From: Zygnema circumcarinatum SAG 698-1b
Lineage: Eukaryota; Plantae; Zygnematophyceae
Assembly (NCBI GenBank): GCA_037447605.1
Contig: CM074812.1
Location: 2,666,001 to 2,730,000, forward strand
Direction of reading: 5' to 3'
DNA length: 64,000 nt
The notes under the pieces were generated by a model that searched no databases, was not told the DNA's origin, and saw nothing but the letters and a program-made list of their open reading frames with translations. The position numbers and the translations under genes were made by a program. Numbering within the stretch: the stretch's first letter is position 1; each line of letters starts with the position of its first letter. This document shows positions 2,531 through 48,131 of this stretch, piece by piece.

Positions 2531-4389
2531 GAATGTTCGGGTTGCAGGGCCGTTCAGCCTGAACGACTGCTTCAAGGCAGTGCGGCAAAAGCCTGCCTGT
2601 GCTGTTACTATAATATAGAGACTGCGCTTTCAATTTTTTTTCCTTTCTGTCGGCAATCGGGAACTCTTTCTCAAGAAGGAGAGATGGCTTGTGCCCATTT
2701 CCCAGAAAAGTTGCATATCAATGGCAAAACGAACGTTTAGCAGTCACACAACTTAGGCGACCATGCATGAGGGGAGAAAGGGGAAGGAGGGGAGGGGAGA
2801 AGAGGGGAGGAAGGGGAGGATGGGAGGGGCAAGGCGGGAGGGAGGGAGGGAAGCGAGGGAGGGAGGGGAGGGACGGAGTGAGGGGAGAGGAGGGTAGGGA
2901 GGGGAGGGGAGGGGAGGGGATAGGGGGGAGGGAGGGGGAGGATGGGAGGGGCAAGACGGGAGGGAGAGAGGGAAGGGAGGGAGGGAGGGAGGGGAGGGAG
3001 AGAGTGAGGGAAGAGGAGGGGAGGAGGAAGAGGGAGGGAATGGGGGGAGGGGTGGGAGTGAGGGGAGAGGAGGGGGGGATGGGAGGGAGGGAGGGAAGGG
3101 GGCGAGGGGAGGCAGAGGGGCCTCGATACCTTTTCAAATTCGATAATCTACGTGGCATTCGCTCACCTGAGCATTATTCCCCGCGAATGACAGGTGTCCA
3201 CAATTTCCAGGATAGACCGAAATATAGAGGCAGCTTGTTTTTCCGTATGTACCCCCTTCTTAACAATCAAGTCCAGAAGCCCATCTCCGGAACACCATTC
3301 CAGAATGAGATGCACGTCATGTCTGTCTTCATACGTTTCCAGGAGGTGCACGCAATTTGCTTGGTCTGAACAGCAAACAATCTCCGCAATCACTGAAATT
3401 GTTTTCGACCACGCACTGCCCTCCACAAGATTGATTGGATCTTCTGATAAAGAACTGCCTTTATGCCTTCCATTCAACACCATACCATACCATACCATAC
3501 CAAGATCATTACTAAAAGGAAGGACACATATAACGAACACATGTGATCGTTGAACAGGGGGAAATCTCTCGAGCTCCTCACTTTTAACGCAATACATTAT
3601 GGCGATTTCTGTGACCACCGCCTCCACGTCTTTCTTCACAACCAGCTTCTCCTTTGAAACGCGCTTGCAAAGCACTGGCTCCTTACTCCTTAGGTTCGTC
3701 GCGCTGTACATAGTTCCAAACCTGCAAGTTCCAATCTTGCGGTCGACCCGATAGTCCTCGCGCACGTCCTTGTAATCCTGATTCAAAATTTTTTCGACCA
3801 TACCCCATCGTCCTTCTTTCTTCCTCCCTCTGCTTTCTTCTGCAGGTTCTGAAAATTCTGAAGGTTCTGAAACCTCCTCCACCTCCTGCCTCTCCTTCCT
3901 CCATGAATCACTGTGTTCGCAGCAGGGTTTCAGCACCGGCAGAAGCCATCCTTTAAGAAAGGCGAACATGGAGTTGCCTTTCGTTTTCCCGGAATCCAAT
4001 TTTGTCTCTCTCTTCTTTATCGATTTCCCTCTTATCTCTCTCTCCTCTCTCTTCACTCCCTCCTTTATCTCCTCTCTTCCCCTTCTCTCCCCCTCTTCTC
4101 TCTCCTCTCTCCCCTCCCTCTCCTCTCTTCCTCTTCTCTCTCCTCTCTCTCGACTCGTTCTCCTATCTCCCTCTTCTCTCTCCTCTCCCTCCTCTCTCCC
4201 TATTTTCTCACCTCCTCGCCTTTCTCCCTCTTCTCTCTCTTCTGTCCTCCCTCCCCACCCTCTCCTCTCTCCCTCGTCTCTCTGCTCTTTATCCTCTCCC
4301 ACTTATCCAACCTTCTCGACTCTCTCCCCCTCCTCTCTCCCTCTTCTCTCTCCTCTCCCTCCTCTCCCCACTTTCTTATCTAATCTCCT

Positions 4390-9726: not shown

Positions 9727-9913
9727 TTTTGTTAGAGTCCGGCCTGCGGCCGTACTGATTCTCTCTGTAGGCGGATTATGTCCAAGCCATGACGAAGGTA
9801 GGCGCTCTCCTATTAAGCAGGCCCCTCCCCTCCCCTCCCCGCCCTCGCCCTCTCTCGCCCCTGGCCGGTTCCGCGTCCTCTCCCCTCCTGTCGCCAGCGG
9901 GCGCTTGGCCGCG

Positions 9914-12900
9914 ATGGCGCGCGCTCGGTCACTTACTCTCGCAGTGGCGGTCCTCCTCTTTGTCGCCGCCGCCGCCACCCCGCGCGAAGCCGCCGCTCAG
10001 GACATGGACCCGCGAAACAGTGAGCCGCCGCGGGAGGGAGGGAGGGAGGGAGGGAGGGAGGGAGAGAGGGAGGGAGGGGGGAAGAGAGGCTGGAAGAAAG
10101 ATGGGGGGCAGAGAAGGGTGCAAAAAGGGAATACGAGAAGGGGAAGAGGGGATCCCCTCTCACCCCCCTTCCCCTCCCGGGGGGGGAGAGAGGGGGGTGA
10201 GAGGTTGAGGAGAAACGGGGAGAGGGGAGGAGAGGGCTGGGGAGGGGGAAAGAGGGGGAAGAGAGCGGGGAAAGGAGGTTGGGGAGAGTGGGATTGAGGT
10301 GGGGGTGGTGAGAAGTAAGAGGAGGAGAGGGGGGGGGAGAGAGGGAGGAGAGAAGGGGGGAGAGAGGTTGTGAGAGAGGGGGGAAAATAGGAGGGGCGAG
10401 AGGGGGGGAGTTCGGGGGGAAGATTGGGGAAAGAGATGGGGNNNNNNNNNNAGGGAGGGAGGGAGGGAGGGAGGGCGGGCGGGCGGGCGGGCGGAGAACC
10501 AATAACCAAGAACTGTGATGATTCCTTCGCTTTCTTTCTTTCCCTTCCATTCCTGCTTTGATGAAGCTTCTAATCGATTTCGTTCTTTTCCTTCATGCAG
10601 CTGTTCAAATCTGCGATGAACTACTTAACGACTATGATCACTTTTCCTCTTTCGACTCCCCCTTCAATGACATTGGAAACTTCACAGTATCAACTATTGA
10701 TGAGTGTGCAGCTCTATGTAATGCCAACTGTTCCTGCATTGCATTTGTACCTTCAGTCCCTCTTCCCTCGTATTGCTGGATTAAGGACAAAATTTATCCT
10801 AAAAACAATTGGCGTTTAACCCCTTCTAGAGACATCTATATGAGGAAGCGGCGAAGCAGTAAGTGCTCAAAGATAGCTTCCTTTGCTACCATTTGAAGAG
10901 GAGGAAAGCTAGATGACCTAGTGTAGCTTTCCATATGAGGAAGGGAGAGAGGGAGGGAGGGAGGGAGTCGAGGGAGGGAGGAAGGGGAGGGAGGGGAGGG
11001 AAGGGAGGGAGGGGAGGGAAGGCAGGGAGGGAGGGGAGGGAGGAGAGGGGAGGGGAGGGGAGGGGAGGGAGGGGAGGATTTCTTTTTCTCCATCGAATGC
11101 ATCCTGATTACAAACTAAACCACAGACTATTACAGGCTATTGTTTAAGAGGCTATTTCTATACAGACTCTCATTCGCAATATCCTCCTCCTCCCCATCCC
11201 CATCCTCGGATTCGACCCGTAATGTTCAACACCAACTTCGTTACTCGTCAAGTTCTGTTTGTAGTCTACGTATTGATGCTTGGGGTGCAGTCGATCATGC
11301 TCAAAGGATGCTCCATACATTGAGGTTTATCAACCAGCCATTCTAATTCCTATGTATTGCGATCGGTTTTGTGACACCTACAGGTGGAAAAAATCTGGTT
11401 CCTATTGTTGTTCCAACAGCAATTGCTGTTGGCCTTATTTCCGTAGCAGCGCTCCTGGTTTTCATTTGGTGGTTGCGCCGAAACAAAAGAGCTTCAAGAG
11501 CTTCATATAAAGGTGCATAGAATGGCTCCTTGCTCTGATCCCTTGCTTCGTCCTCTCTCTGCCACATATGCACATCGCAACTATCTCCGGCTCAAGCTGT
11601 GCACTATCTTCAATTTCGTTCATCCTTATTCATCGACCGCCTCCTATAGTCCACTTTGCTTTCCCAACAAAAAGCGTACCTCTCCTAATAGATCCCTCCC
11701 GTGAAACAACGCATAGACGACGATAAAATGTTGACCATCTATTTTCCTTCATTCAAATACAACAAGCAATACATTACTCACATGACCTATACAGAGCATT
11801 TTGGGCATATTTTCGCTCTGCTCTCGTTCTGCTGCATATTTGAGTCCGACAAGACCAATTCCCCTGTTATATTGCGGCGTACAGGCATGCCAAGAGGCAC
11901 CCCCTCGCCTCGAGGAATGCTCTCACGGGCCGGCAAAGGTGTCATTCAGCTGCCCGGAGGACATCTCATTCAAGCTTTGACCTTTGAAGAAGTTGCAGCA
12001 GCAACTTCGAACTTCAGCGATGAGAACAAGCTTGGAAAAGGAGGATATGGAACAGTCTACAGAGGGACTGCTCCCGATGGCTCCGTTTGGGCGTTCAAGA
12101 GAGCGCAGCGAGTGAACGATGGAGAGGCCGACGCCGAGTTTGAAGACGAGGTGGGATGCAAAACTTCATGGCAGAGGGAGTTTACTCTTCAGGAGAGAGC
12201 AGCTTGTGGAATGCTGCTGCATTTGATTGACTCCTTATCTTCCTTTCATTATATATTCCAAAATTCTTACCTCCATTTGCTCCTGACAATCATATGCAAT
12301 GACTTGCACTTGCAGGAGAGGTGCTGATATTGGGAGGGGAGGTTAAGTGCAGGTCAAACTGACCGCACCCATGGCGCACCGTAACTTGGTCTCTTTGAAG
12401 GGATTCTGCGCGGAGAAGGGAGAGCAGATTCTCATATATGAGTTTGTGGCAAATGGAACCCTAAAGCAGCACCTCATGTTGGATCCAAGTGAGGCCCCAT
12501 TCTCGATCACGCGTTCTTGAGTGAAGGATTTCCTTCCATTGCCTGCATTCTAAAGCCTTGCAAAGCCCGACCAGTTCCTCTTTCTTAAGTTAACTCTTTC
12601 CATGTACATTTGATGGCATCATCGCCATCGTGAGATCAATGCCACATCCCCATTGCATGTCATGTACATGCCATATGATGGCATGTGCCGTTGCGCCCAA
12701 ATCCTCGTGATTCCCCATGATGCGGATGTTTTCCATGGACATGTGATGGCATCATCGCCATCGTGAGATCAATGCCACATCATTTCCACGAAGAAAGGAA
12801 AGCTTTAACCATACTTCTTGTTATTTTCTATTTTAAAGCTGAACGGATAAGAAAACGCCGAGAGTGATTGAAAAATAATATCGTGTTTATCTATTTACAA

Positions 12901-17937: not shown

Positions 17938-20900
17938 TTACCGGATCCCTGGACGTTGCGAAAGTGGAGGAATGAAGCTTTCACTTGAGGTTGTTGCTAT
18001 GGAGCCACTCCCCTGTTGATAAGGGAAAGGGATCCTTTGATTCGGTATTGTTCCAATGTCCTTCTCCCAGTCCACAGCCCCTCCAGAAATTATCTCTTCA
18101 AGGATTCTTGTAACCTCCTGCATGCTCGGCCTCACTCGGCTCTCCAGTTGTGTGCATAATCTTGCAAGCTGAATGAACCTCTTGGCGCCTTCAAGGGGGT
18201 AGTCTTCCTTAAGGAGAGGATCAACTATGGCTGTCCAATTCCCAGCTTGAGCTTGCAGGTTCACCTGAGCAAACAAGTTGAGCAACATAAGAAGAAAGTA
18301 ACAGAGTCAAAACTAATAATTACATCTAAGCTGTTGCAGACAAAACAATCAAGCTGAACAAAGGGTGGGAAAGAAAAGTAAAAAAATGAATGAAGATCCG
18401 AAGTTTTGATATAGGGCGCTTCAGAACTCACCCACTGTACCAGAGTGATGTGCTCTACTGTCTGCTCTATTTCTGTAGGCCGGTCAGCCATTACGACCGG
18501 CTTCTTCCCTGTGATTAGCTCCAAGAGCACCACTCCAAAGCTGCAGCATGCATGCAAAGATCACACCATTAGGCACAGAAGGCACATACGTGCTGAATTG
18601 CTTTATATCGACTGAAGCGGAGACACTTTTTGTAACTCTCATCCGCTGCCCTTCCGCACCCTCCTCCCTCTTTAGCCTCTGCGTGGCGTTTACCTATACA
18701 CATCACTCTTTGTTGAAACTCGGTGAAGATGGCGGTACTCCGGATCCATGTAGCCGATGGTTCCTGCAACGCGAGTGGACACGTGCGTCGCCTCTTCATT
18801 CAAGGGCTTCAAAAGACCGAAGTCTGCGACTTTGGCCTGCAGAGCGGGGTACAAAGAAAAAGAGCACAATAAACATGTTGATCTTGAGATAGGCAGAGAG
18901 GTAAAGTCTGGTATTTTTAAAAGGTATATTCAAGTGTTTGAATAAGAAGGCATGCGCGGCTCTCACCTGCAAGTTCGCATCAAGGAGAATGTTTTCCGAC
19001 TTGATGTCGCGGTGGATGACCGGCTCCTTCGCGAAGCTGTGCAGGTATTGCAGCCCTCGCGCGGAGCCGACGGCAATCTCCAAACGCTGCGAGAAACTTA
19101 AAGGGACTCCGCCGAGGTCTGTGTACAGAGCAAACAGAAAGAAAAAAACGGGCTAGCTCAAGTTAGCACATTTCAATGAGCTTAGAGCTAGGCTAGCTAG
19201 GCACAGGAATCCCTTTGAAAGTAGATAAACATGATATTGTGTTTCAGTCACTCTCGACGTTTTCTTATTCGTTCAGCTGTAAAATAGAATAGTAACAAAA
19301 GTCTGGTTAAAGTTTCCTTTTCTTCGGGGAAATGAGGTGGCATTGATCTCACGATGGCGATGAGGCAATCAAATGTATATGGAAAGAATTAACTTAAGGA
19401 ACCACGAGAAACTGGTCGAGCTTTTCAAGGTTTTAGAATGCAAGCAATGGAAGAACAAAAAAAAAAAAAAGGAGAAAAAAAAAAATCCTTCACTCAAGAA
19501 CGCGTGATTGAGAAAGGGGCCTCACTTGGATCGAGCATGAGGTGCTGCTTCAGGGTTCCATTTGCAACAAACTCATATATGAGAATCTGCTCTCCCTTCT
19601 GCGCGCAGAATCCCTTCAAAGAGACCAAGTTGCGGTGCGCCATGGGTGCGATCAGGTTGACCTGCACTTCCTCCCCTCAAAATATCAGCAGCCTCTCCTC
19701 CAAGTGCAAGTCATTGCATATGATTGTCAGCAGCAAATGGGAGGTAAGAATTTTGGAAGAGATAATGAAAGGAAGATAAGGAGTCAACCAAATGCAGCAG
19801 CATTCCACAAGCTGCTCTCTCCTGAAGAGTAAACTCCCTCTGCCATGCAGTTCTGCATCCCACCTCGTCTTCAAACTCTGCGTCGGCCGCTCCATCGTTC
19901 ACTCGCAGCGCTCTCTTGACCGCCCAAACGGAGCCATCGGGAGCAGTCCCTCTGTAGACTGTTCCATAACCTCCTTTTCCAAGCTTGTTCTCGTTGCTGA
20001 AGTTCGAAGTTGCTGCTGCAACTTCTTCAAGGGTCAAAGCTTGAATGAGATGTCCTCCCGGCAGCTGAATTATGCCTTTGCCTGCACCCCTTGCGAGCCT
20101 CCCTCGAGGAGAGGGGGTGTCTCCTTGCATGCCTGTACGCCGCAATATAACAGGGGAATTGGTTTTGTCAGACTCAAATATGAAGCAGAACGAGAGTAGA
20201 GCGAAAATACGCCCGAAATGCTGTGTACAGTGTCATGTGAGTAATGTATTGCTTGTTGTGTTTTAATCAAGGAAAATAGTTGGTCGACAGTTTATCTTTG
20301 TCTATGCGTTGTTTCACGGGAGGGATCTATTAGGAGAGGCACCTAAAAACCGTAAAAACCCTAAAAACTTTTTGTTGGGAAAGCAAAGTGAACTATAAAA
20401 GGCGGTCGATGAATAAGGATGAACGAAATTGAAGATAGTGCACAGCTTGAGCCGGAGATAGTTGCGATGTTTCTGCGTGGCAGAGAGAGGACGAAGCAAG
20501 GGATCAGAGCAAGGAGCCATTCTATGCACCTTTATATGAATCTCTTGAAGCTCTTTTTTTTCGGCGCAACCACCAAATGAAAACCAGGAGCGCTGCTACG
20601 GAAATAAGGCCAACAGCAATTGCTGCTGGAACAACAATAGGAACCAGATTTTGACTCGATTTTTTTCCACCTGCAGCTGTCACAAAACCGAGAGCAATAC
20701 ATCGGAATTAGAATGGCTGACCGATAAACCTCAATGTATGGAGCATCCTTTGAGCATGATCGACTGCACCCCAAGCATCAAAACGTAGACTAAAAACAGG
20801 ACTAGAAGAGTAACGAAGGTGGTGTTGAATATTACGGGACGAATCCGAGGATGGGGATGGGGAGGGTACTGCTGCTGGAAGAGGGGAGGATATTGCGAAT

Positions 20901-23900
20901 GAGAAAACTCAAGAATTCAATGAGACTATCGAAAGCTTGAATAAGTGCCAGATTTCATTATCCACAACTACAAGCTGCAAGTACTCTGTAAGTGACCTTC
21001 CACACTCTCAATAAAGAGAAGGTTAAAAGTATGAAGATGTAGATCGGGTGCAGAAGTACCGATTTCGTTGGACGAAGGTGGTGGTGGTGGTAATGATTCC
21101 GGAGGAGGTACTGCAATTGAGAACACTCAAGAATTCAATAAGTCTATATAGAAATAGCCTCTATCACAATAGCCTGTAAGAAGTCTGTGGTTTAGTTTGT
21201 AATCAGGATACATTCGATGGAGATGAAGATGATGGACTGCAGGAGAGAGGATACTGGCATTGAGAAAACACAAGGATTCTAAGAAAGTATCGGGACACTT
21301 GAAGAGTATCAATGTGGGGAACAACGGGGACGATACTGCAATTGAGAAAACTCAAGAACTCAATGGGACTATTAAAAGCTTGAATAAGTGTCAGATTTCA
21401 TTGTCCACAACTACAAGCTGCAAGCTAAAAGGCGATACTCTGTAAGTGATCTTCCACACTCTCAATTAAGAAAAGGTAAAAAGTATGAAGCTGAAGGTTG
21501 GGTTCAGAAGTACCGATTTTGTTGAGGGAAGGTGGTGGTGGGGGTACTGATTCCGGAGGAGCAGCTACTGTAATTCAGAAATCACAATAATTCAATGAGT
21601 CTGAATAGAAACAGCCTCTATCACAATTGCCTGTAAATAGTCTGTAGTTTAGTTTGTAGTCAAGATTCATTCAAAGGAGTGAAAAAGCATCAATGTGGGG
21701 AAAAACTCTTGTTTTCAGGATTACCAGTTGTCTTAAGGGGAGGTGGCGGTGAGGGTGATGGTGGTGGAGGAGGGGGTACTGCAACTGCAAAAATAATGGT
21801 TTTCGTCAAAGATAGTACTTTGTTGACGATGTCTAATCTTTGTACAACAATAAAAAAAAGATAGAGATTAAATGTCCAGTGTATGCACGTGAACAGTGAT
21901 GCTTCATTTTGGTTTTTTATTCCAAACTGAGAGCAAAGGTTTAGCGGTGAGATTAGTAGTCAAGCTGGAGATAAAACTGATTGAACTTAGAAGAATTGAT
22001 AACTTACTGTCGCGCACATACAGCTTAACAGATTCTGCGCTCTTTGTGTTGGTAACATTAGTTTTCAGGTAACATTCGAGCCTGTCTTCTACCAGACGTG
22101 TAGCAAATCCGAGGCACGAGCAGTCGCTTGCACAGAGCGGTATGCAATCTTCATCAGTTACCACAGTCACATTTGTGTAGTCGTTCCCATTAGAATTAGT
22201 ATTATTGGACAATGTGAACGTATCAGCTAGGCCCGCACATTCTCCTGCACAGTCGAACATAAAAAATGAAGCAAATGATGAATAATATCAATGATAATAT
22301 TATCATCATCAGCCGTATAATTCGCGTATCGGTATATCGCATCGTCAGTATCTATGGCTATACCACTAGATCTTTTTAAATTCATGGAAGCGATGGAGAC
22401 GCACAGGGGAGGAATGCAGCAAGACTGTATAAGCAGACGAGCCAGATATTAAAAAAACTCACAATTGACCAGACTGACTACGCATTCAGGACTGATTCAA
22501 AACGAAAGAGTGAGCTCCCTACGAAAGTAGACCGAATCTAACAGTGCCCTTCTAATCTCTAGGGATGTGACGGTGAGAGAATAAAAAAGGCGATTTCGAA
22601 AATTACCGCCAGAAGATGGTGTGGGTACTCGTGTATACAACTTAACAGCCGAGGTAGAGCTCTGTTGGTTGGAAACATCAGTTTTCAGGGAACATACGAG
22701 ACGCGAGACGTTTTCTTGAGTAGAAAAATACATAGAAAATCCGAGGCAGAAGCAATCGCTATTGCACAGCGAAAGGCACTGGACATTGTCTGCCACGTAA
22801 TATGCTCCATAGTCGCTCCCCGGAGAATCACTATAATTGAAATAGCTGAAGGCATTCGTTAGGCCTGCACATCCTCCTGCACAACCAAACATAAAACTGA
22901 AGCAAATGATGAATAATGTCGATGATGACAGTATCATCATTAGCCGTATAATTCACCTATCGATCTATCACATCGTAACATGTACTGCCACCTATGGAAC
23001 CGTATGGTGCCCTGGATCGCGTAAGTCACGAACTCACTGGCCAGCGATTGGCTAATGGGGGAGTTGGCAACGCACCCGTCCAGCTGCTCTCAAAGCTCCA
23101 CGACAAAATCTGATGAATATCATAACATAGTCCCGTTGCAGCTGTGAATCCAACGTAGGCCGCCGTTACATTGGCGCAGGCCGTACACCCGAGAGGCCGA
23201 AGGATGCTGCAAAGGGACTCGGTGTAGGTGACAACGGGGTTATGAGGGGGGCTATCGACATCGCTCAAGTATATGGACCACTTGCTGGTATCGCCGAAGT
23301 AGTGTACCCATGCATACTTCGTCGAGTTTTCCCACAAGTGGTCAAGGGCGGACGTACTTTGTTGTGTAACAACCGAGGGGCTCCACTTTTCAAGTATTGC
23401 AACATGTCTTCCATCAGGTTCGTTGTACTCAGGATTGGGGTACGTGTCGAATGCAACGGCTATGGAACCAACATTGGCCGATGGAACGGTAGTATCTCCG
23501 TACGTGTACCCGAGGCTCCCGCCCTTGACTAAAGAAATGTTGCTCAAGTCCGCATTGGAAGCAACAAAAGTGAAAGTAAGGCCATCTCCGTCACACCCAT
23601 TGTTGGTGTTGAAAATGAGGAACGAGAAACTAGCCGTAAAAGAAGCTGCTTGGCAATCTCCAGTTGTACTTTTCCGGAGCAAGGTCACCGGAGCCGGATG
23701 GAATGCATTACCAACAACGTATTGGTTCATGTCTGTAAGCTGCAGACTGCTGCCAACGATTGCTGTGCTGCCTTGCATGATGGGAGGTAGGCTTGCGTTG
23801 AAACCCTCATAGTTGAAGGCCGTCGGGGGAGTAAGAACTGCATCACCAAAAAGACGAAGATCGGAAATAAGTAGAAGAGCAATGCATCTGTCGCGTAGCT

Positions 23901-25387
23901 GGTAGAAAGGAGAGTACTTAATGGAACTAACTTGGGAAGAGCTCTCTGTGAAAAAATCCAACTTGGAATCATTCCCAAATTTCGAATGAAGATTGGTGAA
24001 GCACCGGAAAGGAAACGATCGAGGAGAAAAAAACAGCACAGCAGTGTTGTTTTAGAAGCTCTGTTCTGTAGAGCAGTCAGATGGAGAAAACACTCTCCCC
24101 ACCTCTTCCCCCCCTCTGTCTCCCTCTCTCCCCCACTCTCCCCCCCTTTTTCCCCAACCTCTCTGCCTCCTCTCAGTCCCCCTCTGAAAACAATTTTTTG
24201 ATCGTCCGGAGACAAATGCTCGAAAGAATCGTGCGAAGGATTCATTCCATGCATGCATCATGCTATCAAACTTCAACGGTCCGAGTAACATGCATGCTGT
24301 CGATTTGAATTACAGATATTCATCCTGCAAACGTTACGATGAGAAGTCCCTTCTGTCCTTTCATCATGAAAGGACTGTTCTACGCTCAATTCTTGGTCAT
24401 GGTTAACCAGAGGCGTCACTTTACAAAACCTGAGATGACCACGCCATTAAACAAAGTACCCAAAACACAAAAGGACCTAAATCCAGAACTCACCCCTCCA
24501 ATGGAAGTGGTTGGGAAACAGCTTACCACATATTCCGTACTCTTTCTGACATCCGACACCACAGTAGTCCGCCGTTTTGCCGCACTTGTTGACATTGGAG
24601 CAGCACGCAGTGTCGTTACATTGCAGATTTACAAAGGGCCCACAAGTGCCTGAAAGAAACGGAGCAGCAACAAGCAAGTACGACACGCAAACAACAACAA
24701 AAAAACAAAAAAAGTGAAATGCGTATTAAGAAAACAAAACAGAAAGATAAGAAAACAAGATGCAAATACATAGAGACAAGTGGTTCACAGAGGCATTGAC
24801 TGATGAAATGCATGTGCAAGCAAAAGTTCCACGAACAATTCCATTTTAACGCCGTTCAGGGCAGACGCTGACCGTCAGTAGATGTCGGAAGTAGACTCCG
24901 GCGAGTTGTTCTTGTCGGACCCAGTTCAAGAGTTCTCCCCTCTTCTGTTCAGAGTCAATTTTGAAAAGTGGGATGTAAGAAGCAGAGAAGGGAAGGAAAA
25001 AGAGTGAAGACGAAAGACATACGAGACACGAGGAAAATATCATACATACAAGACCACTCCATCCCTCCCTCCCTCCCTCCTTCCTGAGCTGCACGCGGGG
25101 AGCAATGCAGCACGTTAACACATGAAGACAGCAGAAAAGCCAGCTCTTAAAAAATCTCAAAACTGACAAGGACTGAATGGGGTTTCTCCTTTCCAGATCC
25201 CTCTCTCCCTCCCTCCCTCCCTCCCTCCNNNNNNNNNNCCTCCCTCCCTCCCTCCCTCCCTCCCTCCCTCCCTCGGCGGCTCACTGTTTCGCGGGTGCAT
25301 GTCCTGATTGGCGGCTTCGCGCGCGGCGGCGGCTGCGGCAATGAGGAGGATCGCCGCCGCGAGAGAGAGAGACCGCGCGCGCGCCAT
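17938..25387 (-). CDS. Receptor-like kinase B: signal peptide + hevein/CBM18 + legume (L-type) lectin + 2x PAN/apple-like + Pro-rich stalk + TM + RD kinase, about 989 aa
   Basis: Exons 25387-25285 (SP), 24649-24527 (hevein), 23837-23076 (L-lectin), 22876-22607 and 22244-22008 (PAN), 21778-21725, 21567-21514, 21110-21060, 20874-20836 (Pro-rich), 20670-20530 (TM), 20132-19864, 19661-19526, 19118-18967, 18836-18694, 18540-18432, 18264-17938 (kinase). All GT-AG with an open frame throughout. Kinase exons are nearly identical to RLK-A. Use of each stalk micro-exon is predicted, not proven. Confidence 0.85.
22008..22876 (-). CDS. Two tandem PAN/apple-like domain exons of RLK-B
   Basis: [21 protein letters not shown] and [21 protein letters not shown]. 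The intron sequence upstream of each is also duplicated (about 22920-22975 versus 22290-22345); both exons phase 1-1. Confidence 0.8.
23076..23837 (-). CDS. Legume (L-type) lectin domain exon of RLK-B
   Basis: [74 protein letters not shown] matches the lectin_legB motif order; 762 nt, phase 1-1. Confidence 0.9.
24527..24649 (-). CDS. Hevein-like chitin-binding domain (CBM18) exon of RLK-B
   Basis: [40 protein letters not shown]: 8 Cys in hevein spacing (CG..C..CCS..CG..YC..GCQ..YG.C); 123 nt, phase 1-1. Confidence 0.85.
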
Positions 25388-25831
25388 CGCGGCCAAGCGC
25401 CCGCCCGAGACAGGAGGGGACAGGACGCGGGCGCGGCCAGAGGCGAGGAGAAGGCGGGGAGAGGGAGGGGGGGGGAGGGGCCTGCTTAGTAGTTGGGCGC
25501 CGTCCCCCGCCATGGCCGGTGACAGGGACGTTGGAGCGTTCTCGGCGCGTTGACTTGGGACGTTGGCGCGTTGACTTGGGACGGGTGGGATGTGACCGTC
25601 ATTCCTGGAAGGAATGGTTTATCGAATTTAGGATTCGCCAGGATTTAGGCCAATCACCATCTGCCACGTGTTATTTTGTATGACGTGGCTGCAGACTTTG
25701 TAAGAAACGACAGAATACATCATTTTAAATGTACGGAGAGTTCAGAAGTCAATTTCCTTATGAGGAAAACATTAGGGGTTGTCAGACTTAAAAATCATCC
25801 GTATGTCCGTTCGTACGTTTTTCACGAAATA

Positions 25832-30152: not shown

Positions 30153-48131
<17,979 letters not shown>

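Follow-up and report, generated by a model that had tools for sequence, protein, structure and literature searches.

A 64,000-nucleotide stretch of the genome of Zygnema circumcarinatum SAG 698-1b (the window; assembly GCA_037447605.1, contig CM074812.1, positions 2,666,001 to 2,730,000 of the forward strand) carries on its minus strand a receptor kinase gene, here called gene A, whose extracellular part combines a hevein module, a legume-type lectin and two PAN/apple domains. Gene A is intact, spliced as one chain and expressed. We consider it probable that its product is a functional single-pass receptor-like kinase (RLK) of the RLK/Pelle type, which arose by shuffling of ectodomain exons onto a transmembrane-kinase chassis that it has in common with a neighbouring paralogue, gene B. 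As judged from its sequence, the protein would most likely act as a sensor for glycans or glycoproteins that faces the cell wall or mucilage.

Gene A runs from an ATG at 25387 to a TAA at 17940-17938; a preliminary description of this DNA gave its limits as 17938-25387, which are exactly those of the open spliced model. The model comprises 16 exons with GT-AG borders at every intron and a single open frame of 1004 amino acids (Table 1). In order, it encodes a signal peptide, a 24-residue linker, a hevein/CBM18 module, an L-type lectin domain, two PAN/apple domains (PAN1 and PAN2), a Pro-rich stalk, one transmembrane (TM) helix and an intact RD kinase. All exons from the linker through the TM exon are uniformly of phase 1-1.

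Evidence for splicing comes from contigs of four public runs of the alga, which were mapped over 19450-25400. Three of the four runs, all from one 2024 study, behave as RNA, and word depth and CT..AC joints (GT..AG on the minus strand) were scored. Word depth over gene A is ~100-500 in exon bins and 0-25 in intron bins. Ten consecutive junctions, leading from the kinase through the stalk to the linker exon, are seen in spliced contigs from three runs (coordinates in Table 1). The contigs chain the linker exon, the hevein, lectin, PAN1 and PAN2 exons, three stalk exons, the TM exon and the kinase exons K1 and K2. Contigs of 540-599 nucleotides run from the end of the lectin exon through PAN1 and PAN2 into stalk exon A, and a further set with one common depth value covers stalk exons A, B and C together with the TM exon. 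No competing junction was found in the RNA layout, apart from one 'goes back' artefact at the repeated stalk region. The preliminary description had read everything from hevein to kinase as one spliced gene. This is borne out by the RNA contigs from the linker exon through K2, and the joints do not place the hevein or lectin exons on another transcript.

The RNA data also corrected the model: a 72-nucleotide exon (24944-24873) was added, the first stalk exon now begins at 21784, and a Pro-rich mini-exon (20868-20836) is skipped. A direct splice from exon 1 to the hevein exon, a donor at 23038, an acceptor at 21778 and a fourth stalk exon were ruled out by a frame check and the RNA joints.

Intron 1 contains an assembly gap, represented by a run of N and flanked on both sides by the same (GGGA)n repeat unit. 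Because the gap is intronic and both flanking exons are of phase 1, the reading frame is independent of the gap length. An extra exon could, formally, be hidden inside the gap. The corresponding (GGGA)n tract of gene B is interrupted by a gap as well (10442-10451); the repeat therefore breaks the assembly systematically.

Table 1. Exons and other features of gene A, and the position of gene B, in window coordinates.
Feature	Position	Strand	Basis
Exon 1: start codon and signal peptide, ends in phase 1	25285..25387	-	Open frame, GT donor, hydrophobic residues 4-26; RNA depth 92-160 over 25221-25400; homologous to gene B exon 1
Intron 1 with (GGGA)n tract and assembly gap (N 25229-25238)	24945..25284	-	Sequence; zero RNA depth over 25022-25220
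Exon 2: 24-residue linker, phase 1-1	24873..24944	-	3' end: joint 24649/24873 in three runs; acceptor inferred by acceptor scan (24944, or 24941 as in-frame NAGNAG alternative)
Exon 3: hevein/CBM18 module, 8 Cys	24527..24649	-	Pfam; alignment to pokeweed lectin-C and wheat germ agglutinin; both joints
Exon 4: L-type (legume) lectin domain, 6 Cys	23076..23837	-	Pfam, PDB matches, model; joints 23837/24527 and 22876/23076
Exon 5: PAN/apple domain 1	22607..22876	-	Likeness to PAN2, model fold, contigs spanning PAN1-PAN2
Exon 6: PAN/apple domain 2	22008..22244	-	Pfam PAN_2; joints 22244/22607 and 21784/22008
Exon 7: Pro-rich stalk unit A	21725..21784	-	Joints 21784/22008 and 21567/21725
Exon 8: Pro-rich stalk unit B	21514..21567	-	Joints; within ~455 bp tandem duplication
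Exon 9: Pro-rich stalk unit C	21060..21110	-	Joints 21110/21514 and 20676/21060; tandem duplication
Fourth Pro-rich mini-exon copy, GT-AG, phase 1-1, skipped	20836..20868	-	Bypassed by joint 20676/21060; low depth
Exon 10: TM helix and basic stop-transfer LRRKKR	20530..20676	-	Hydropathy peak 2.74; joints 20676/21060 and 20132/20530
K1: juxtamembrane, Gly loop, catalytic Lys, alpha-C Glu	19864..20132	-	Pfam profile 2-37; joints
K2	19526..19661	-	Pfam profile 50-92; joint 19661/19864
K3 with HRDIKSEN (RD type)	18967..19118	-	Pfam profile 99-138; boundaries by GT-AG and frame only
K4: DFG and activation loop	18694..18836	-	Pfam profile 138-188; model
K5	18432..18540	-	Model; collinear with P0001
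K6, C-terminal tail, stop codon	17938..18264	-	Model; tail 96% identical to gene B tail
Gene B: tail-to-tail paralogue, one PAN_2 exon	9914 to ~14164	+	Alignment to gene A

All ectodomain modules truly belong to their respective fold families. Pfam, search and domain tests were carried out exon by exon. Chitin_bind_1 matches the hevein exon (24528-24647) with 30.6 bits, above the cut-off of 27.8, and the module has the eight-Cys knot with the CCS...CG...YC core. Lectin_legB matches the lectin exon (23077-23835) with 123.5 bits (E 1e-35). The AlphaFold model of this domain (pLDDT 90) shows the beta-sandwich fold, with template-modelling scores of 0.75-0.83 against legume seed lectins and Foldseek E-values of 1e-16 to the Dolichos, Griffonia and peanut lectins. 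For the PAN domains, Pfam finds PAN_2 in the second exon (22009-22242; 25 bits, cut-off 21.1) and nothing in the first (22608-22874). The two exons are 45% identical, and four invariant Cys are common to six PAN-like exons, PAN1 included. The AlphaFold model of PAN1 (pLDDT 86) adopts an apple/PAN fold, and its top PDB matches are all PAN/apple domains: factor XI, prekallikrein, an Eimeria PAN domain and Brassica SRK, and further the N domain of hepatocyte growth factor and the Sarcocystis galactose lectin SML-2. The domain list of the preliminary description is thus upheld by Pfam, where Chitin_bind_1, Lectin_legB and PAN (this last only in the second PAN exon) all score above cut-off, as well as by PDB sequence matches and AlphaFold models.

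In the hydropathy profile, a signal-like stretch at the N-terminus and a TM helix at residues ~589-615 are the only two segments found. Pro makes up 47% of the stalk, which has extensin-like motifs of the SPPPP type and places 55 residues below a globular head of 460. Cysteines are even in number in each ectodomain module (8, 6, 6 and 6; 26 in total), and the ectodomain contains 10 N-x-S/T sequons. On the cytoplasmic side, K1 to K4 match successive positions of the kinase profile (Table 1), and K5 and K6 gave no Pfam kinase match when scanned singly. The kinase is of the RD type, with complete catalytic motifs including GYMDPEY. Gene A hence has the hallmarks of an RLK/Pelle receptor, namely a signal peptide, a single TM helix and a cytoplasmic Ser/Thr kinase with intact motifs.

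The shared chassis becomes apparent from a comparison with gene B, which lies on the plus strand, tail-to-tail with gene A. Its 5' region and signal-peptide exon have 82% nucleotide identity to those of gene A, its only PAN_2 exon scores 22.7 bits, and its TM, kinase and tail parts are collinear with gene A, introns included. In the shared part, exons are 96.4%, introns 91.4% and the proteins 92.7% identical, with a dS of 0.069 and a dN/dS of 0.40. The cytoplasmic half of gene A is under purifying selection, and the pattern of identity fits a recent duplication or gene conversion with purifying selection acting on both copies. Of six variant letters in the RNA, four match gene B, as does a loose contig end at 19526; gene B therefore appears to be expressed, and its homologous K2-K3 junction is likewise seen in RNA. 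The variants at 19572 and 19898 match neither gene and may derive from an allele or from a third, nearly identical kinase copy.

The stalk is encoded by a tandem duplication of ~455 bp (20883-21222 versus 21326-21679, 78-90% identity), and gene A contains four copies of the stalk mini-exon motif. Together with the uniform 1-1 phase, the stalk duplication makes a textbook case of exon shuffling. Jointly with the reading of gene A as a functional receptor, we think it reasonably probable that the gene was assembled by phase 1-1 exon shuffling onto the TM-kinase chassis common to gene B. Since the neighbouring paralogue carries a different ectodomain on the same chassis, gene A appears to be a further outcome of the exon shuffling known from receptors of algae near the land plants.

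An exhaustive, profile-free search of 1.84 billion representative proteins with the lectin exon returned 1521 matches. The best, at 42% identity, is P0001, a EukProt transcript that encodes two L-lectin domains together with a kinase; next come bacterial Calx-beta/GSDH multi-lectin proteins, and land-plant L-type lectin receptor-like kinases (L-LecRKs) are found at ~33-38%. Across about 15 billion proteins, no close homologue of the gene A protein was found. When the lectin exon and P0153 were used in word-based searches, only weak bacterial matches came up, and the Closterium proteomes in the collection contained distant lectin relatives only. A four-Cys signature (C-x-ASF; LC..LRP..C..C) marks an algal lectin subtype, which includes P0001, P0007, P0018, P0042, P0016, P0014 and P0036 and is probably disulfide-stabilised; the signature is missing from the aligned legume, land-plant LecRK and bacterial lectin domains. 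The gene A lectin has two Cys beyond this signature.

A hevein-type cysteine pattern, searched with a loose regular expression, occurs in 0 of 153 lectin relatives, and Chitin_bind_1 is absent from all lectin relatives that were scanned against Pfam. Among the 153, PAN domains accompany the lectin only in P0042 (PAN-lectin-PAN, then another lectin open reading frame) and P0018 (PAN-lectin). Both come from the same Logan sample as a contig, L002 (SRR9302961), on which positions 9835-12838 hold consecutive open reading frames for PAN, L-lectin, L-lectin and a papain-type protease. In Closterium, an L-lectin is fused to Peptidase_C1 in two proteins, P0080 and P0155. As a separate observation in Zygnema, RNA contigs with a depth of ~470-500 in one run match the last ~40 nucleotides of the lectin exon (23076-23124) and then diverge, which suggests that highly expressed lectin-domain paralogues exist elsewhere in the genome.

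The kinase of P0001 is 44% identical to that of gene A. Used as a query, it retrieves only plant proteins named as RLK/Pelle, at 31-39% identity and from mixed subfamilies; the placement is coarse, the matches being dominated by tandem-kinase proteins of land plants. P0218, an algal transcript for a leucine-rich-repeat RLK, is 52% identical to the P0001 kinase. We calculated an IQ-TREE phylogeny from 35 kinase domains, a small and biased sample with neither an outgroup nor a non-RLK kinase, in which groups were named after the tree had been seen. Here, genes A and B fall among the RLK subfamilies as sisters to P0001 and P0218 (support 93/92). The land-plant L-LEC kinases form a 99/98 clade within an L-LEC+SD+CRK clade (100/98), and genes A and B lie outside both. 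Grouping genes A and B plus P0001 and P0218 with L-LEC is rejected (approximately unbiased test, p 0.009; 35 rows, groups post hoc); a sister position to the whole L-LEC+SD+CRK clade is not (p 0.116). The position of the kinase outside the L-LEC clade and the algal subtype of the lectin therefore suggest an independent fusion. The simplest reading of these sequences would be that lectin and PAN domains were joined to this kinase independently of the land-plant L-type and G-type LecRKs.

How gene A relates to known systems depends on the module considered. With the land-plant L-LecRKs, such as Arabidopsis LecRK-I.9/DORN1, and with Zygnema Zci_10218 (PMC11096116), it has in common a Lectin_legB domain, a single TM helix and an RD kinase of the RLK/Pelle type. 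In contrast to these, the lectin of gene A is one of four ectodomain modules and belongs to the Cys-containing algal subtype, whose next-best relatives are bacterial; gene A thus has the ectodomain of the class, a Lectin_legB, but not its kinase, which is outside the L-LEC clade. Like the G-type (S-domain) LecRKs and Brassica SRK, gene A places a PAN_2-type apple domain beside the membrane. However, it has two PAN domains rather than one and no EGF domain, no exon matches the Pfam families for bulb lectin (B_lectin) or S_locus_glycop, and its kinase lies outside the SD/CRK/L-LEC clade, with the sister position permitted by the test above.

Hevein-kinases offer a further parallel. Table S3 of Van Holle & Van Damme 2019 records Marchantia proteins with the architectures hevein(2x)/ and hevein(4x)/protein kinase, as well as hevein/jacalin/protein kinase in Chlamydomonas and Sphagnum. 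All of these, like gene A, unite CBM18 and a protein kinase in one protein, and the jacalin-containing forms also combine two lectin families. Gene A differs in that its single hevein module, which has lost the aromatic pair described below, is partnered with an L-lectin and PAN domains instead of hevein repeats or jacalin. An SPPPP-type, extensin-like segment just outside the membrane is known from the PERKs, where it constitutes the whole ectodomain, whereas in gene A it forms a short stalk under a large head. Finally, RLK gene shuffling has been reported for Closterium ehrenbergii and Nitella (Sasaki et al. 2007, as cited in PMC10868138). These charophyte RLKs have, like the A/B pair, a conserved TM-kinase chassis with swapped ectodomains, but the module set of gene A was found in none of them.

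The preliminary description knew of no standard class with this architecture, and the search results agree: there is no hevein pattern among the lectin relatives, and Van Holle & Van Damme 2019 record no protein with hevein plus legume lectin or legume lectin plus PAN in 21 species, zygnematophytes not being among them. The set of hevein, legume lectin and PAN was found in no database protein or paper searched; it could be among the 26 domain combinations that Feng et al. 2024 (PMC11096116) report for Lectin_legB in Zygnematophyceae and relatives. Judged from titles and abstracts, no paper in the collection searched describes Chitin_bind_1 and Lectin_legB in one protein. It is thus fair to call the architecture undescribed. 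The surprise voiced in the preliminary description holds insofar as the full module set was matched nowhere in the data searched, but it was overstated, since hevein-kinases, the 26 Lectin_legB combinations and shuffling in Closterium were already known. Gene A is not categorically new: lectin-RLKs, hevein-kinases, membrane-adjacent PAN domains, Pro-rich stalks and shuffled algal RLKs each have a precedent. As to the age of the lectin-kinase fusion, Feng et al. 2024 date the joining of Lectin_legB and Pkinase to the common ancestor of Zygnematophyceae and embryophytes; Ngou et al. 2024 describe L-lectin RLKs as exclusive to embryophytes.

What the receptor might bind can be approached through its ligand-site residues. 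In the hevein module, CCSNVNKCG aligns with CCSQWGYCG of wheat germ agglutinin (WGA) and the pokeweed lectin. Of the contact set (Ser19, aromatic 21, aromatic 23 and Tyr30), Ser and Tyr are kept and positions 21 and 23 are Val and Lys. The preliminary description had seen that both stacking aromatics are missing from CCSNVNKC and that Ser and the later Tyr remain, and the alignment confirms it. Because both aromatics are lost, strong chitin stacking by this module is unlikely. The caution given there that the ligand may not be chitin is well founded in view of this alignment, and on sequence grounds the ligand is unlikely to be chitin and more likely to be a glycan of the alga itself or of its environment.

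In the lectin, IAVAFDT, a reading already given in the preliminary description, aligns with VGVEFDT of the peanut lectin. The residues of the peanut lectin monosaccharide triad (Asp83, Gly104 and Asn127) are all present as D, G and N. Four of six metal ligands (E121, D123, Y125, N127, D132 and H137) are identical, D132 is replaced by Glu and E121 by Ala; the latter change, which P0007/P0153 also have, occurs rarely in the 28 lectin domains aligned. Sugar binding by the L-lectin thus appears possible but uncertain.

The preliminary description suggested a multivalent glycan sensor, possibly a LysM-independent receptor for cell walls or pathogens, a role that is predicted from the domain types. 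We propose the following working model for gene A as a wall- or mucilage-facing sensor. A rigid, probably O-glycosylated, extensin-like stalk would carry the head of hevein, L-lectin and PAN domains into the surrounding wall or mucilage. Sugar would most likely be bound by the L-lectin, since the Asp/Gly/Asn triad is retained and the Ca2+ ligands appear to be. Next to the membrane, the two PAN domains may mediate dimerisation or make an additional contact with a glycan or protein, by analogy with S-locus-type kinases and apicomplexan PAN lectins. The hevein module, devoid of its stacking aromatics, might bind weakly or to a different target, or serve as a structural cap. Clustering upon ligand binding would then activate the RD kinase by trans-phosphorylation.

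Several observations weigh against a functional glycan receptor. Both hevein stacking aromatics are gone, and the Mn2+-ligand Glu of the lectin is Ala. Such a change at the Mn2+ site of a legume lectin is expected to weaken the metal-stabilised binding loop. Moreover, many lectin domains of land-plant L-LecRKs bind no sugar, so that the domain type alone predicts no ligand. The dN/dS value covers the shared half only, no orthologue having been found against which the ectodomain could be compared. With regard to the transcript, the RNA joints of gene A stop at K2, the joins from K2 to K6 resting on GT-AG borders and frame; the exon 1/exon 2 splice is absent among the RNA junctions (in one run, a joint was dropped at repeats); and the transcript was pieced together from contigs, with no single long read from end to end.

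A more ambitious version of the proposed sensor is a working glycan receptor in which a sugar-binding L-lectin, a retargeted hevein module and the PAN domains together read a complex polysaccharide, be it of the alga's own pectin- and arabinogalactan-protein-rich wall, its mucilage or the wall of a parasite. Such a receptor would be independent of LysM and malectin and would have arisen separately from the land-plant LecRKs, in the algal sister lineage of land plants, and gene B could be its PAN-PAN co-receptor. We regard this version as tentative and rather unlikely as a whole.

Alternatively, gene A could encode a cell-cell recognition or adhesion receptor that acts in sexual conjugation or mucilage contact and reads glycoproteins of the partner cell, not the alga's own wall. 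The pointers to this are indirect: PAN/apple domains and lectins are classic adhesion modules, the structural matches include microneme adhesins and SRK, and a fast-varying ectodomain on a conserved kinase chassis resembles recognition loci. We hold this role to be unlikely.

Recognition of microbes is a further candidate role. Here, gene A would be a LysM-independent pattern-recognition receptor that detects chitin or a different glycan of microbial walls, for instance those of chytrid parasites, with the hevein module as the recognition site. This module is a true CBM18 domain with all 8 Cys, Ser19 and Tyr30, it sits in a multivalent lectin head on a kinase with intact motifs, and hevein-kinase proteins exist in Marchantia. 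However, gene A has Val and Lys in place of the aromatics with which hevein and WGA stack on GlcNAc, and there is one hevein module only, whereas strong chitin binders are usually multivalent. We therefore consider this role improbable.

Equally doubtful is the possibility that gene A is an evolutionary by-product, recently shuffled and transcribed but with no selected ectodomain function, and heading towards loss or neofunctionalisation. This would agree with the lack of an orthologue or close homologue in the proteins searched, with the degraded key ligand residues in two modules and with the stalk mini-exon that is already skipped. It sits poorly with 16 exons that are open over 1004 codons, with ectodomain cysteines that come in even numbers per domain, with high expression and correct splicing, and with the dN/dS of 0.40 in the half shared with gene B. 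That a secreted lectin gene and a PAN-RLK were misread as one, or chimerically joined at the gap, is very improbable and largely refuted: there is a gap in the 5' part of gene A, gene B shows that a PAN-only RLK exists and the exon 1-exon 2 splice is absent from the RNA junctions, but contigs in three runs cross the lectin-PAN1, PAN1-PAN2, PAN2-stalk, stalk-TM and TM-kinase joints with no alternative junction, and the gap lies upstream of the lectin-to-kinase joints in an intron with zero RNA depth.

LecRKs are a major and poorly understood class of plant receptors, and the ligand is unknown for most of them. Because its L-lectin retains the canonical sugar triad, gene A is a tractable candidate for a LecRK that truly senses carbohydrates. 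An L-lectin and PAN domains on a kinase outside the L-LEC and SD clades imply that lectin-RLK architectures appear to have arisen more than once. The adjacent gene B amounts to a natural experiment, an ectodomain swap on a near-identical kinase, in which specificity by phase 1-1 shuffling can be addressed. Gene A alone opens no long-standing question, as similar shuffling has already been documented.

Two further open reading frames lie elsewhere in the window. At 30153-31700 on the plus strand, a frame of 516 codons encodes a FYVE zinc finger and is broken up by a long Gly/Arg/Glu tract, formed by GGGA-type repeats in frame, which is probably an intron read through. At 3163-4299 on the minus strand, the frame of a separate gene encodes the N-terminal part of a Ser/Thr kinase behind a Glu/Arg-rich repeat.

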